NCBI GenBank assembly: GCA_964252035.1
Contig: OZ176210.1
Length of the DNA stretch: 64,000 nucleotides
Strand: one strand, 5' to 3'
Source of the DNA: Podarcis erhardii
Taxonomy: Eukaryota
The translations under genes and the position numbers were made by a program. The notes beneath the pieces were generated by a model. It saw nothing but the letters and a program-made list of their open reading frames with translations. It was not told the DNA's origin and did not search any database. Each line of letters begins with the position of its first letter. The first letter of the stretch is position 1. Below, piece after piece: positions 981 to 64,000 of the stretch.

Positions 981-1009
981 TACACTATCCTTGTAGCAGA
1001 TGTCTAAAA

Positions 1010-1145
1010 CAGTGTTTCCCAACCTGATGTCTCCAGCTGTTTTCAGACTACAGTTCCCATCATTCCTGACTACTGGTCTTGCTAGCTAGGGATGATGGGA
1101 GTTGTAGTCCAAAAACAGCTGGAGACCCAAGGTTGGGAAACACTG
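1010..1145. mobile_element. 136-bp palindromic hAT-type MITE
   Basis: TIR CAGTGTTTCCCAACCT / AGGTTGGGAAACACTG. Perfect 8-bp TSD GTCTAAAA (1002-1009, 1146-1153). The whole element folds back. Confidence 0.9.
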
Positions 1146-2042
1146 GTCTAAAACCCATTAGGGCTCCGGCTGAAACTGACCAGATATATTAAGTTTACTG
1201 ATATCATCCTTTCTTTTACTGCATGTAAAAAGAGAAGAATCATGTCAGTGACCAACCTCCTACTCAGTTTCGTATTAGTCAACTACAAACTTCCTGCAGT
1301 CTTAAACAAATCGCTCTCAGCCACATGCAAAGGGGTTGGTAGTTAGCCAATCTGAGGAAGGCTGACAGAATGCAATAGGAGAAATCTGTCCAGCCCTAAT
1401 CAATGTTTGCTTTCTTTGAAGGATAGCCTTTCTCCACTTTTGTTTTAATCAGACTGGATGCACTCTTCAATAGCTTTACCATGTTTCCTCATTCTTTATG
1501 CCCATCTTGCTGTCTGTTCAACGGAGATTTGTACCCAATTTACATAAATTCACATTTTGAACGATTTCTCAGAAATGTGAAATCTTCCATTTTTAAACCT
1601 AGAACAAATTCATTCCACATTTTGCATCGTTTATTTATTTAAAATATTTATATTCTGTCTTTGGGGCCTAAAGGGCAGCTAACAAGCCCAACGTTGAAGA
1701 CAATACATTTTGATATCACGAATAACGTTATCATTAGCAGGCCTGTAGACTTTCGGAGTTATACATGTCCATTAATCTGAGTCAAACTACTCTTGAGTAT
1801 CAGTGCTAGGATTGTTCTGCCCTTTCTCTCATTCACACAGATGCACTATATGCTTAGTTATTTCCAACTAGTTGTCAGGGAGCATTGGAACCCACATACC
1901 AGAAATTTCAGACTTCATTACTGTAGCGTTGCAATATTCTCCATGGTTTTAACCAAGGTTAGCTTTTTTAAACAACACCCATAGTTTTACTCACTGTCTG
2001 GAGTGAGCCAGAAGCCAAGAACTGAAAGTCCAATCATTCTGA

Positions 2043-2536
2043 TCATAGAATCACAGAGTTGGAAGGGACCAATGCAAAAATATGCAAAAATATGCAGCTG
2101 CCCCATATAGGGAGCAAACCTGCAGCCTTGTCATTATCAGCTGCACTCCCACATGTCAGGAGTGCGTGCAGGAGCCAGGCCCTGTGACTGGTAGGGCCTT
2201 GCAGGACTGGGGCCTTCCTGAGTTTGGCCTGGAAGGACAAGGCACGGCCGCACAGGTGAGGCTTGACAGAAGACTCGTAGCACCTGGTGGCAAGGGCCAG
2301 GAGGGGTATTTAAGACCAGCATTTCTCTCTGGCTCTTTGCCACAGCAACACACTACCCACCTAGCTGTGCTTCGGCTTCCTGGCACCTGGTTTCCTGATT
2401 TGTGGACTCTTGGCTTCCTGACCCCTGGGCTGCTGATTCCTGCTTCCCAACCTCTATCCCAGTCCTGACGTACCAAGCCAGGACTCCGACTGCCTGTAAC
2501 CCGGATTGTGACACCAAGCAACTGAGCTTTCCAGGC
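2043..2536 (-). mobile_element. Decayed tRNA-derived SINE with CR1-type tail, split by a solo LTR
   Basis: CR1-like tail ATCATAGAATCACAGAGTTGGAAGGGACC at the left. SINE-like sequence resumes (CAACTGAGCT) right after the LTR at 2514. Confidence 0.5.
2154..2513 (+). mobile_element. Solo LTR (Gypsy-like), 360 bp
   Basis: TGTCAGG...TGTGACA termini and TATA-like TATTTAA at 2307-2313. No internal coding sequence. TSD imperfect (CCACA/CCAAG). Confidence 0.65.
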
Positions 2537-3679
2537 TCAGGACAGAAGAAAAATCCAAGAACTGAATGGAAGGGCTGTCAGGATCATACCAGAAGCAGGA
2601 CTGGAAAACAAGCCAGGAGTCAGGACTAAAGAGCAGTCACAGCAGTCACACAAAAGCAAGACCAGATACCAAGTAAAAAATCAGGAGCAAAGATGACTGG
2701 AAATACAGAGGCCCATGAGCACTCAGGTAGATGTTGGCCAAGCAATGAAGCGGATGCTGCTAGGACTTTGCACCGTTTCAGCCACATCCCACAAAACCAC
2801 TGTGAACATCATTCCTCATTTCCCCCATGAACCACCAGGTTGAGCAGAGATGCCAAAGTAATTGGACTTAAACAGGATCAACCGGCTACTGTGGTTGGCT
2901 TAAGTAAATGCCATACATGTAGCATGCCAAATACACCAGTCCTGGCAAGTTCGCTAGGAATATTTTTGGCATTTCAGCCCCCTTTGATTCATCCAGGCTA
3001 TTTCCTGGCACTAATGGTTGGTTATCCGGGAGCCAGACTTTGGGGTTTGTGGGTTTTTTGTGTGTGTGATCTTTTAAAAACATATATTATAGACAGCATG
3101 TGCCAGTCTTGTGACCTAGGAGTGGTTAATGTCAGGTAAGGAAATTAATCCGAAAAGCATAGTGCCTTAGGAGATATTTTCAGAGCTTTATATTCCAACT
3201 ACTATTTAGAAAGCAAGGCATCTTTTGGATCAGCCTCTCTTACCACAGACATGGTGTGCCTAGTCCTTTTTCACTAAATCATCATTATTGTATAATGTTA
3301 CAAAATAAACAGATTCTGGAAATCATTGAAAATGTTACCTAAACTGATGCTCAGAGTCAGATGCAGACTGAAGGCCACACACTAGGCCCTCAGCCAAGCA
3401 GATACAGAGTCAATTAAGGGACATTATCAAAAACAAGCTGACTAGCAGTTACCACATATAGCATGCCTGAAGTTTTCAGAAAATATATATGTTCAACTAA
3501 ACTTTGGCATTAGCACTAAGGTTGAGAATTACTGTCACACTCTCCCTCCCTCCCTCCCTCCCCCCCCCTCTCTCTCACACGCACACACACCACAGTCTAT
3601 GCTGCCTTGGGAAATTTTTACCATGATTTCAGAGAATAGTGATCAAACCAAAACATCAATAGTGTTGCTTTATCTTGCC

Positions 3680-4533
3680 CATAGAGGCAAGTGGCGTGGG
3701 GCGCCAGGGCACCAAGTTATAGAGGGCACCAAGTTCTGGAGGGAAGACGCAGAGGCTGGGCACGGCGCCTCCCGGCATCATAGAATCATAGAATCATAGA
3801 GTTGGAAGAGACCACAAGGGCCATTGAGTCCAACCCCCTGCCAAGCAGGAAACACCATCAGAGCACTCCTGACATATGGTTGTCAAGCCTCTGCTTAAAG
3901 ACCTCCAAAGAAGGAGACTCCACCACACTCCTTGGCAGCAAATTCCACTGTCGAACAGTTCTTACTGTCAGGAAGTTCTTCCTAATGTTTAGGTGGAATC
4001 TTCTTTCTTGTAGTTTGGAACCATTGCTCCGTGTCCGCTTCTCTGGAGCAGCAGAAAACAACCTTTCTCCCTCCTCTATGTGACATCCTTTTATATATTT
4101 GAACATGGCTATCATATCACCCCTTAACTTCCTCTTCTCCAGGCTAAACATGCCCAGCTCCCTTAGCCGTTCCTCATAAGGCATCGTTTCCAGGCCTTTG
4201 ACCATTTTGGTTGCCCTCCTCTGGACACGTTCCAGTTTGTCAGTGTCCTTCTTGAACTGTGGTGCCCAGAACTGGACACAGTACTCCAGGTGAGGTCTGA
4301 CCAGAGCAGAATACAGAATACAGCCGCCCTCGCCCACCTCGCTGAAGCAGCGCTGCGCTCGGAGCCTCCGCCTCTTCCCCACTGTAGGAGCTGCCCTCCA
4401 GCCCCTGCCCGCCTCCTCCAGCCCCCAAAGCTGCCGGCAGTGCTGTAAAAAGGTTGGCAACTCTGGGAAACAGGGAGGGGGGTGCCGGAGGGATCTTTGC
4501 ACCATGACGCCAGATATACTTAAGACGGCCCTG
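3680..4533. mobile_element. GC/CpG-rich non-autonomous DNA-transposon-like host element interrupted by CR1
   Basis: GC-rich segments flank the CR1 on both sides, and the right end ...AAGACGGCCCTG resembles MITE termini. No TSD confirmed. Confidence 0.35.
3777..4316 (-). mobile_element. CR1 LINE, 5'-truncated 3' end (ORF2 C-terminus, 3' UTR, (ATTCTATG)n tail)
   Basis: Translation [19 protein letters not shown]...[13 protein letters not shown] is a CR1 ORF2 C-terminus. Octamer tail repeats are present. Confidence 0.97.
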
Positions 4534-60630: not shown

Positions 60631-61047
60631 NNNNNNNNNNNNNNNNNNNNNNNNNNNNNNNNNNNNNNNNNNNNNNNNNNNNNNNNNNNNNNNNNNNNNN
60701 NNNNNNNNNNNNNNNNNNNNNNNNNNNNNNNNNNNNNNNNNNNNNNNNNNNNNNNNNNNNNNNNNNNNNNNNNNNNNNNNNNNNNNNNNNNNNNNNNNNN
60801 NNNNNNNNNNNNNNNNNNNNNNNNNNNNNNNNNNNNNNNNNNNNNNNNNNNNNNNNNNNNNNNNNNNNNNNNNNNNNNNNNNNNNNNNNNNNNNNNNNNN
60901 NNNNNNNNNNNNNNNNNNNNNNNNNNNNNNNNNNNNNNNNNNNNNNNNNNNNNNNNNNNNNNNNNNNNNNNNNNNNNNNNNNNNNNNNNNNNNNNNNNNN
61001 NNNNNNNNNNNNNNNNNNNNNNNNNNNNNNNNNNNNNNNNNNNNNNC
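60631..61047. other. Assembly gap (N run; right edge +/-1)
   Basis: Run of n. Confidence 0.98.
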
Positions 61048-61328
61048 CTTTATCACCTGATATCATGGTGACACCAAGTGACTGACAGGTGAGTGACCTG
61101 CAGGGGGGCTGAGGATCCAGACCACTGAGGATCCTGTTTCCTACTTTGATACTGTTGAATTTTGTAATGCCAGAAAATAACACCTTGTATTTCCCCTAAC
61201 CCAGGTGCACATTGCATGTTGAAAAATTCACATTCATGAATTGTAATCTCTCCCCAGTTTCAGAGATATCTATACTACAGATTTATGTATGTTTTATTTT
61301 ATACCAGGAACAGCTGCATATTTCATAA

Positions 61329-63219
61329 CACCGGGCAACAATTTTTTACTTTTTGAATGTTGTCTAGATTTCTACAACTGATTTAGGATATTTTTGCACT
61401 GCTGAATCAGGAAATGGCATCCGTTTCTCTCCATCAGGTCAGGTTTACTGTAAACTGAATGGTGGGCATTGATAAAGGTAAGTACATGTAAATTGCATGT
61501 TGCTTCACCATTTTTCAAACTTCAGGGCTTGAACTTCTGTTTCTTGGAACTCCTGGAATGCTCAGCGGCAGGGAGGTCTCTCTTCAGAGTCCAACAGTAG
61601 TCAGCCATCATGACTGCGTCCCAGCGACCCTGATACCTGGTCTCCATCTCTTTCATGTCCTGATGGAATCTCTCCCCCTGCTTGTCACTCATTGAACCCA
61701 GATTCTCAGGAAACCGGTCCATATGTGAAAATAGGTAGTGCATCTTGACGCTCATGTTGCAGCCCAGGTTTCTGAAAGCAGTCAGCATGTTGTTGACAAG
61801 TTCTGCGTAGTTTCTGGCCTTATTGTTGCCAAGAAAGTTCTTCACTACCAGAACAAATGCCTTCCACACTTCCAGTTCCACTTCATTCATTGAGTTTCCG
61901 AACTCTGGATCTCTGATGAGCTGACGGATCTGAGGACCGTCAAAGATGCCAGCTTTCAACTTCTCCATGGTCAATCCTGGAAAAGCCTGGCACAAGTAAG
62001 TGAAGCAGTCACCATCCTTGTCCAGAGGTGACTTGGTGAACTGCTTGATTAAGCCGAGCTTGATGTGCAGCGGTGGGAAGAGTATTCTGTCTCTGTCCAC
62101 CAGAGGGTCATTGATGACGCTCCTTTTTTTGCAAGGCACCAATTCCTCCCGCACAGGCCAGTCCTTCTTCGTGTAATGCTGAGCACAGCCCCTACTATCC
62201 CACATGCACAGAAAACATGGGTACTTGGTGAAGCAAGACTGTTGTCCCAACAAAAAGTTCACCATCTTCAGGTCAACGCAAATAAACCACTTATGCTGAT
62301 CATAACCATTTTTCTCCAGCACATACTTCACCACTTCATAGTTCTCCTTCAGTGTACTCGAGTGAGCCAGGGGTATAGAGGGAAACTGGTTGCCATTGTG
62401 TAGCAGAACACATTTCAGTGATCACTTGCTGCTGTCAATGAACAGTCTCCAATCTTTGGGTTCGTACTGTGGCACTCCAAGCTTGAGCAGAAGCTGCGCA
62501 ATATCTGCACAGTACACCAAGTCCTTCTCTTCCGAGAAAAAACGGAGGTACTCTTGATGCCTGTTGCCGAAGAAGCTGATGAGAGCACTGTCAGAGAGGA
62601 GGTTTTTTTCCTTCATTCTGGATGCCAACAGTTCGGCATAGTCCTTTGACAAGCTGAGGTTGCGAACTAGATCAATCAACTCCTTTTGGGAAAATGGATG
62701 TGGAGCATCATCTTCAAGAACCACTTCTTCTTCTTCATGTCCTTCAACACTGGAGGCATCTTCATCACTAATGTCAGGAAGTTCTCCGAAGATAGGCACT
62801 GGAATTTCATCACAATGAGCTACAGGACGACGTGCTGATTGAAGATCAGGATTAACTTAGTTTTGATCCCCCAACTTTATGCTTTGCCGCACCAATTTAT
62901 GGAAGATTTCGAGGTTTTATGACTTCAAACTGATCCCTTTTCGACATAATCACCCAGAACTATCGGACCTGAATACTTCTTGTCATTAAAATAATCATTT
63001 CCAATCAAAACAATTATTCGACATGGCATTTTGCCCCCACCAACTTCTTCTAAAATGCTCCACACAAGCGTACATGTGAACAAAAACGTAAAAAAATGAC
63101 ATGTGGCCATAGCTCAAAACTTGACCTGATTGAGCAAAACCAAAGTGATTTTTGGATTCAGCGCATCAGATTCGTCCTAAATCAACTGAAAAAACGCAGA
63201 CAACAAATTTGTTGTTGTG
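61329..63219 (-). mobile_element. Chapaev3 (CMC superfamily) DNA transposon, 1891 bp
   Basis: Termini CACCGGGCAACAA... / ...AATTTGTTGTTGTG, TAA TSD on both sides (61326-28, 63220-22), ~100-bp imperfect subterminal inverted similarity (GTTGTCT...TGATTTAGGA...GCTGAATC...ATCAGGTCA), and an internal transposase. Confidence 0.88.
61522..62850 (-). pseudogene. Chapaev3-type DDE transposase, one in-frame stop, N-terminus deleted
   Basis: The two listed ORFs are in one frame, separated only by TGA at 62422-24. Motifs: PDLQSARRPV, WRLFIDSSK, ICVDLK, CFLCMWD, PPLHIKLGL, IFDGPQIR, MHYLFSH, GERFHQ, MMADYCW. Confidence 0.88.
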
Positions 63220-64000
63220 TAATCTGTCCCACCTTCTCCCTCCATCTTAAAGTCAACTCCCTGTTATCCCTTAAGTCTACTATACTTGGTACAAATCCCA
63301 CTTATTGGAATTGATCCAGCCTTCCTTCTTTCTCTGCCCTCCACTCATCCCTGTTTCCTTCCTTCCCACTTCCCTTCACTATAAAATTTGATTTCCCAGT
63401 ATAGGTTACATTTAAAAGTTGAAAGAAACAGGTCAAATGAAGTATAAGTAGCAAAAGGGGCTGTTTTCCATGTTGCAGGCAATATTAACTGTATCCAGAA
63501 TCACAGCTTTCTTTTGTATCTTTATCTCCATTCTCTTTCAGGTCATGAATAGTCAATCTGTCAAAGTTATCATATGGAAACTAGCTGAGAAAAGTCACTA
63601 TCATCATGATATGCATCTGGAACAATGTTACTGTATGCTATCTTGAACTGTGATAAATCCATAGGTATTGGTAAAGAGACTTGCCAAGCCATTTAGGAAA
63701 TAATAAATCAGTTTTAAGTTATACAGTTTTAAATTAGCTATTCTCCTGTGGCTCGATGAGGTAGATAATATGCATGTCGCTTCCATTAAGACTAATAGGT
63801 GTTAATACGTGTACATCTTCAGTGTTTTGAGATAAGGATGTGCATTTTAAGGATCCCTTAATGTCAGTCAAGTAGCATATCATTTATCAAACATGTAGCT
63901 ACTTTTAAAAAAGTGAATAAATTTAGAATGAATACATTACCATGGTACACCTCTTTCACTTGCCCAGTGGGGTAGAGCCCCAATGCTAGCTTTTTGTCAC

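Follow-up and report, generated by a model that had tools for sequence, protein, structure and literature searches.

Chapaev3 elements are cut-and-paste transposons that, after Transib, stand nearest to the ancestor of RAG1, the V(D)J recombinase. They also serve as a textbook example of transposons that spread horizontally. The group as described (Kapitonov & Jurka 2008; Yuan & Wessler 2011, via PMC4079192) duplicates a TWA target flanked by A and T, has CAC...GTG tips, measures about 2.5 kb and encodes, in a single exon, a transposase of about 550 amino acids. This protein has an N-terminal Chapa domain and a DDE core (two aspartates and a glutamate) with C(2)C, LH and H(4)H motifs. Here we report on a Chapaev3 copy at positions 61329-63219 of a 64,000-nucleotide stretch of Podarcis erhardii contig OZ176210.1 (hereafter the window) and on the family to which it belongs. 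The family shares the features just listed. The window copy itself differs: neither Chapa domain nor start codon is left in it, and one of its terminal repeats is damaged. We consider it very likely that this is a fixed, dead and non-autonomous Chapaev3 copy (a CMC/Transib-related DDE element) from a family that was acquired horizontally and amplified in lizards.

Three Chapaev3 families have been described as horizontally transferred: Merrow among lamprey, fish and dragonfly, Garfield among insects and a bracovirus, and Conan between tenrec and anole (Zhang et al. 2014, PMC4079192). The present family resembles them in its patchy cross-phylum distribution, its hallmarks and its many internal-deletion derivatives. 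Its transposase of 556 amino acids equals Garfield's in total length (78+478) and comes close to Merrow's (78+484; PMC4079192). Two exons each are described for Merrow, at 2,451 bp, and Garfield, at 2,289 bp, whereas the intact element here is 2,539 bp long with one open reading frame (ORF); the families are set apart by these descriptions only. A search of the supplements of PMC4079192 for Merrow, Garfield or Conan sequences or terminal-repeat strings found none. The hosts here (lacertid-like lizards, Lates, Macrobrachium, Pycnogonum and Oratosquilla) are not among the hosts in that paper.

The sole squamate described so far is Anolis carolinensis. Its Chapaev3-1_AC and -2_AC elements and their derivatives (Novick et al. 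2010, PMC3014272) share with the present family a squamate host and TWA duplications, and their repeats, CACTAGGAAACACAATTT or CACTATGTAACAAAATTT, resemble CACTGGTCAACAACAAATTT here. At about 1.8-1.9 kb (PMC3014272), the Anolis elements are also similar in length to the window copy. Their families are old (12-35% divergent), low-copy and extinct, whereas the window copy lies about 2% from the majority of its family, and that family looks abundant. Searches of the literature turned up no account of lacertid Chapaev3 elements and none of the present set of hosts. Horizontal transfer of Chapaev3 was already published in 2014 and is as such a known phenomenon. A young, apparently abundant lacertid-like family would add a well-resolved transfer where few events are documented.

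The limits of the window copy can be read directly. It opens with CAC at 61329 and closes with GTG at 63219. TAA stands on both sides (left, 61326-61328; right, 63220-63222), preceded by A at 61325 and followed by T at 63223. This fits the target pattern, A-TWA...TWA-T with CAC/GTG tips, reported as a hallmark of Chapaev3 (PMC4079192). The same insertion between a 5' A and a 3' T is seen in two relatives, L003 and L004, and the duplications are again of the TWA type: TAA in L003, TTA in L004 and L005. The edges do not arise by chance, because similarity to independent copies, at other loci and in other runs, ends exactly at 61329 and 63219 and because summed contig depth falls at both edges from about 10^5 to about 10^2.

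In one lizard run, X1 (organism A; contigs totalling 1.56 Gb), a contig covering 61050-61362 fits the left junction with no differences. A second contig (63204-63881, one difference) spans the right junction and reaches 16 letters into the element, under the 31-letter rule for bridging. The insertion is very probably present in the X1 sample, which may itself come from the source species. A run of 416 N (60631-61046) stops 280 bp before the element.

What would the element look like when intact? A word search with the C-terminal 299 residues of the window frame gave 2,179 matches. The best of these, P0001 (96% protein identity), is encoded on two Logan contigs, L001 and L002, which are 97% identical to the window copy in DNA and in which the same frame is open. 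The cluster of P0001 at 90% identity or more contains open proteins of 556-560 amino acids, among them P0123 on contig L008. L008 carries a complete element: 2,539 bp, a perfect 13-bp terminal repeat, CACTGGTCAACAA, and one uninterrupted ORF of 556 amino acids.

Measured against this relative, the window copy has lost three pieces. Alignment by blastn with L008 and L003 places an internal deletion of about 477 bp at 62851-62852 (minus strand, as for all features within the element), with 2 nucleotides of microhomology at the junction. Gone with it are the last part of the 5' leader, the start codon ATG and codons 1-114, which encode the Chapa zinc-finger domain. A segment of about 166 bp, present in L003, L004-L006 and L008, is missing at 61445/61446; contigs from X1 and from two metagenome RNA libraries considered below, X15 and X16, continue into this segment at 61446. 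The third loss, of 5 bp, lies in the 5' terminal repeat. The sizes balance against L008: 2539 - 477 - 166 - 5 = 1891.

Alignment with the ends of L008 defines the termini. In coding orientation, the 3' terminal inverted repeat, CACCGGGCAACAA (61329-61341), has two substitutions relative to the intact 13-bp sequence. The 5' repeat (63212-63219) keeps 8 of 13 bases: TGGTC is gone after the terminal CAC. A merely poor terminal repeat, as the weak match between the two ends of the window copy might have indicated, was rejected. The reads show a 5-bp deletion, with ACCAGTG continuing after 63217 in 26 X1 contigs, in 18 contigs from a second, lizard-like run (X12), and in X15 and X16. Inside the repeats, the 5' leader and subterminal region (62853-63211) carries subterminal repeats, TGTTGTCT, GATTTAGG and GCTGAATC, in common with the other end. 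There the 3' untranslated and subterminal region (61342-61521) contains the junction of the 166-bp deletion.

The N-terminus missing from the window copy is rich in Cys and His in the full-length proteins P0122, P0123 and P0128 (CRN..FCYICGEY..H..CKAC..H..CYFC). This region corresponds to the complex zinc finger named Chapa, which Kapitonov and Koonin (PMC4411706) describe for RAG1, in its N-terminal part, as well as for the transposases of Chapaev and Chapaev3. Recognized by this Cys/His pattern only, the domain is present in the full-length proteins of the family and absent from the window copy. The 5' deletion junctions of the window copy, L001 and L002 are all different, L004-L006 have another, larger deletion, and further deletion joints are seen among the lizard contigs. 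Therefore many independent internal-deletion derivatives have arisen from the family, as is usual for DNA transposons. Copies longer than the window copy also occur among the lizard contigs.

The remnant transposase frame runs over 61522-62850 on the minus strand. Its translation gives 442 codons followed by the gene's own stop (61522-61524), corresponding to codons 115-556 of a 556-codon gene; the aligned range in full-length P0123 and P0128 is residues 116-556. No ATG opens the frame, and the first in-frame Met lies far inside it. An internal TGA (62422-62424) stands where L001, L002 and L003 have CGA (Arg) in a GCG context, a CpG transition. The catalytic residues are all in place: the first Asp in FIDSSK (62434-62436), the second Asp in CVDLK (62272-62274) and the Glu in GERFHQ (61672-61674), each invariant in 36 homologs. 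The C(2)C motif (CFLC, 62206-62217) follows the second Asp by 19 residues. In the protein the H(4)H motif (HYLFSH, 61723-61740) comes 17 residues ahead of the Glu, and the LH motif (PPLHIK) is also in the frame. All three motifs have been given as Chapaev signatures (Zhang et al. 2014, PMC4079192). Across the 36-homolog alignment D122, D176, E375, C195 and C198 are invariant and the His residues nearly so.

Is the window copy, then, a young and nearly autonomous element, one point mutation from function? A single in-frame stop in 442 codons, the preserved catalytic and zinc-site motifs and the open frame in L001 and L002 would all agree with this. The comparison with the 2,539-bp element of L008 refutes it for the window copy: the ATG and codons 1-114 are deleted, and the 5' repeat is without 5 of its 13 bases. 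Of 1,323 sites of the frame aligned with L001 (here the same as L002), 25 (1.9%) carry private substitutions, which are spread evenly over codon positions 1, 2 and 3 (10:9:6). CpG transitions account for 11 of them, the CGA-to-TGA change included. With 7 synonymous and 18 non-synonymous changes, the ratio of non-synonymous to synonymous divergence (dN/dS) against L001 is 0.65. There is a 3-bp in-frame insertion near 62028. Besides the stop, 18 residues are replaced; two of these replacements (G189C and N227S) hit positions invariant in all 36 homologs, and a further four hit positions that are nearly so. Counted along the entire element, X1 and the window copy differ at 37 places, about 2%.

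The window copy is a dead, non-autonomous deletion derivative, not one mutation from function, and we regard a nearly autonomous element as extremely improbable. From the pattern of substitutions, the remaining frame has decayed neutrally, by about 2%. The copy cannot make transposase and, with one repeat damaged, may also be a poor substrate for transposition. A sequence-only reading of this locus had correctly identified the CAC...GTG ends, the matching TAA duplications and the acidic motifs. It had also described the element as structurally complete-ended and barely decayed, with a 442-codon frame broken only by a TGA. The frame, the TGA and its CpG context are as it said; given the missing ATG, the three deletions, the insertion, the private substitutions and the residue changes, neither 'only' nor 'barely decayed' nor structural completeness is confirmed.

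A long open frame survives in the window copy, and the annotations of several genomes present its homologs as host proteins. Might this be a domesticated gene, an N-terminally truncated transposase exapted by the host? An in-frame stop interrupts the frame, and a start codon is missing. The frame is flanked by terminal repeats and target duplications and is one among thousands of similar pieces. Its dN/dS against its own sublineage and its altered invariant residues point the same way, and we give domestication next to no credence.

Where, if the window copy is a dead member of a once mobile family, did that family come from? The 90% cluster of P0001 includes a prawn protein, Macrobrachium nipponense XP_064120350.1, and adjacent clusters hold proteins from Lates japonicus (a teleost), Pycnogonum litorale (a sea spider) and Oratosquilla oratoria (a mantis shrimp). 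The pieces of the window frame are 87-90% identical to the Macrobrachium sequence, compared as protein only; for the C-terminal piece the protein identity is 88% with a Lates copy and 87% with a Pycnogonum copy. A protein of Helobdella robusta shows 66-69% identity, and Helobdella is listed among Chapaev3 hosts (PMC4079192). The only named squamate homolog, from Rhineura, has 63% protein identity. At the DNA level L001, a contig of the lizard type, matches the Lates japonicus copy along 1,451 bp and the Pycnogonum litorale copy along 768 bp, in both cases with 90.0% identity, and the non-coding ends of L001 still align with these copies at 80-86%. Horizontal transfer has been recognized from a nucleotide identity of 80% or more along 300 bp or more in hosts too distantly related for neutral DNA to stay conserved (as in PMC4079192), and the present values lie above these thresholds. 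In a maximum-likelihood tree the window copy and P0001 (support 99/96) fall in a clade neighbouring fish, sea spider and leech sequences; the Rhineura homolog is placed in the other major clade.

Closer relatives still come from RNA. X15 and X16, RNA libraries labelled invertebrate metagenome and fish metagenome respectively, yield contigs of 95-99% identity that extend to the tips of the element and continue into flanks of their own. Four more RNA libraries, labelled fish or mollusc and from four further studies, contain 9-10% of the sampled words. Four positions distinguish the lizard form. At both 61513 and 61898 one base occurs in the window, L001, L002 and every contig of X1 and X12, another in X15, X16 and L003-L008. 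At 61546 and 62341 the base common to the window, L001 and L002 is uncontradicted in X1 and X12, and L003-L008 differ. This pattern of diagnostic bases suggests a single founder of the lizard sublineage.

An ancient, vertically inherited Chapaev3 would also look alike across animals if the transposase were strongly conserved. Chapaev3 is widespread in animals, and the dN/dS of 0.25 between L001 and the intact L008 indicates some purifying selection between lineages. In that same comparison, however, dS is only 0.05. Agreement with the copies from fish and sea spider stays near 90% across the ORF and extends into alignable non-coding ends, the tree is incongruent with host phylogeny, with Rhineura distant and in the other clade, and the lizard copies decay neutrally. 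Judged from these sequences, vertical descent could not explain such values for hosts that split hundreds of millions of years ago, and we hold it to be highly improbable.

Fish and aquatic arthropods, rather than other squamates, appear to carry the nearest relatives of the lizard sublineage. Because of this, the comparisons support entry of the family into the lizard lineage by horizontal transfer, followed by amplification there. The direction and the date of such a transfer are presumptive. A horizontally transferred family is what the sequence-only reading had proposed, and the teleost and sea spider DNA, the prawn protein in the 90% cluster and the RNA contigs bear it out. Its 'relatively recent invasion' holds loosely, from the 2% figure; this is not a dating, and in a loose sense it would imply an age of millions of years. 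A scan of IMG/VR viral contigs for a relative in a viral vector found none.

Could the cross-phylum matches be contamination of fish, invertebrate or arthropod data by lizard, or the reverse? Metatranscriptome pools are prone to mixed content. Yet X15, X16 and L003-L008 have non-lizard bases at positions where lizard contigs show no alternative, and the RNA libraries with matches stem from six different studies. The copies in Lates and Pycnogonum, on contigs 1.6 and 8.8 Mb long, are about 10% diverged from the lizard form and so do not represent lizard sequence. Because the bases at 61513 and 61898 set them apart from lizard contigs, the X15 and X16 contigs do not appear to be lizard contamination. 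Contamination as the source of the matches seems to us quite improbable, and horizontal acquisition is the reading we retain.

The assignment to Chapaev3 is supported by structure as well as by the published hallmarks. In an AlphaFold2 model of P0001 the mean predicted local distance difference test score is 82 and the predicted template-modelling score 0.76. A Foldseek search of the PDB returned as its top 49 matches the RAG1 core, HzTransib (Helicoverpa Transib) and BbRAGL (amphioxus), with E values of 2e-7 to 1e-4. The template-modelling scores of these matches by query are 0.45-0.51; P-element transposase scores far lower. The catalytic core is thus predicted to have the RAG1/Transib fold. 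The spacing of the two zinc motifs, C(2)C 19 residues past the second Asp and H(4)H 17 before the Glu, presumably parallels the RAG1 zinc site. In the model, the RAG1 core, Transib and ProtoRAG (PDB 6dbx, 6pqx and 6b40) resemble the family both as the best structural matches and in this predicted spacing. They differ from it in sequence, at 9-13% identity, and in their target duplication, which is 5 bp in Transib and RAG and 3 bp here; the Chapaev3 element described here has neither a RAG2-like partner nor ends resembling recombination signal sequences. A profile search of PDB sequences with the Chapaev3 protein gave no match, nor did an Rfam scan of the window. Chapaev and Chapaev3 have been assigned to the Transib superfamily (PMC4411706). 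The sequence-only reading had also called the element Chapaev3, and the hallmarks tested and the predicted fold uphold that call.

The family is well represented in lizard data. X1 has 2,766 contig pieces that can be placed on the query, 1,218 of them at least 99% alike. Roughly half or more of the words sampled from the query occur in runs from seven further coded organisms, X12 among them. The lizard has perhaps a thousand or more copies.

Several points weigh against our reading of a horizontally acquired, lizard-amplified Chapaev3 family. Summed contig depth in X1 is 1.4-4.7x10^5 on the element and 92-215 on the flanks, a ratio of about 1,000-4,000, which is not a copy number and is to be read only as 'very many'. 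All matches in X12 fall on the element and none on the flanks; hence no orthologous empty site was seen there, and X12, its flanks uncovered, would not fix the age of the insertion relative to speciation. For the close non-lizard contigs, 'fish' and 'invertebrate' are library labels only. The contamination check of the Lates and Pycnogonum assemblies is the contig span alone. The placement in Chapaev3 comes from published hallmarks and fold, not from an alignment to Repbase, and a Pfam scan of both ORF pieces matched no family model, a lack that also counts against us.

We propose the following history for the window copy. The parent element measures about 2.5 kb, is bounded by 13-bp repeats and encodes one transposase of 556 amino acids, in which a Chapa domain is joined to a DDE core like that of RAG1 and Transib, with a C(2)C...H(4)H zinc site holding the core together. 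Chapa domain and core would bind the terminal repeats and the subterminal repeats (end binding is presumed), and the DDE site would excise the element. Insertion at A-TWA-T would then duplicate TWA; for the window copy the site was A-TAA-T, with TAA duplicated. The losses of about 477 bp, about 166 bp and 5 bp occurred before or after this insertion, the large ones probably by abortive gap repair, because the deletion junctions show microhomology. About 2% of neutral decay followed.

Is the lineage still alive and moving between animal phyla? We think this unlikely. An intact L008 with perfect repeats, the low dN/dS between lineages and the closely similar contigs in RNA libraries would speak for it; intact ORFs of 556 amino acids were found only in data sets other than the lizard-assigned ones. 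If lacertids, with perhaps a thousand or more copies diverged by only about 2%, had also kept an intact autonomous copy, as the sequence-only reading thought possible, an amniote would harbour a RAG1-like (Chapaev3) transposon that is active now or was so very recently, and horizontal transfer would link aquatic arthropods or fish to terrestrial lizards. The family points to natural, intact transposases whose activity can be tested. The window copy, taken alone, is an ordinary dead deletion derivative.

Some of the relatives have peculiarities of their own. L003, a 2.8-kb relative (ENA contig ctg90404l), has a nested structure, in which 47 bp from the 5' end of one copy precede another, complete 5' end at TAA. 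It has ACG where its relatives have ATG (regions L003:1968-2066 and L003:2788-2961). A 173-bp block in its N-terminal coding region was considered as an intron like those of Merrow and Garfield and rejected, L008 and the prawn gene model being uninterrupted. L004, L005 and L006 are one 1.8-kb deletion derivative at one locus, with an identical left flank (TTA) and 99.9% identity, in independent data sets (ERZ27292588, SRR6291313 and DRR729338); they represent one organism sampled repeatedly, probably as RNA. The flanks of L008 are unequal, TTA and TAA (L008:656-658 and 3198-3200). This would reflect a mutation in one of the duplications or a megahit contig that fuses two copies.

In public records P0009, P0169, P0181 and P0182, transposase fragments carry the names of host genes. 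One from Chionoecetes opilio is called 'pyruvate dehydrogenase phosphatase regulatory subunit' (PDPR), in a fused model with PF01571, and one from Lates japonicus 'NACHT, LRR and PYD domains-containing protein 12-like' (NLRP12-like). These names are probably annotation artefacts, and their occurrence in several genome annotations is a warning for annotators.

The window contains pieces of other elements. Two ORFs, 3858-4505 (minus strand) and 48246-49184 (plus strand), share a near-identical C-terminal stretch of about 150 amino acids; we take them to be 3' reverse-transcriptase ends of a CR1-type long interspersed nuclear element (LINE), two fairly young copies of one family. A third ORF, 46464-46964 (plus strand), contains AFELWCWRRLL..VPWTARRSN..LKLRLQYFGHLMRR. 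To us it resembles the C-terminal part of the reverse transcriptase of a Bov-B/RTE-type LINE, a class known for horizontal transfer in squamates.

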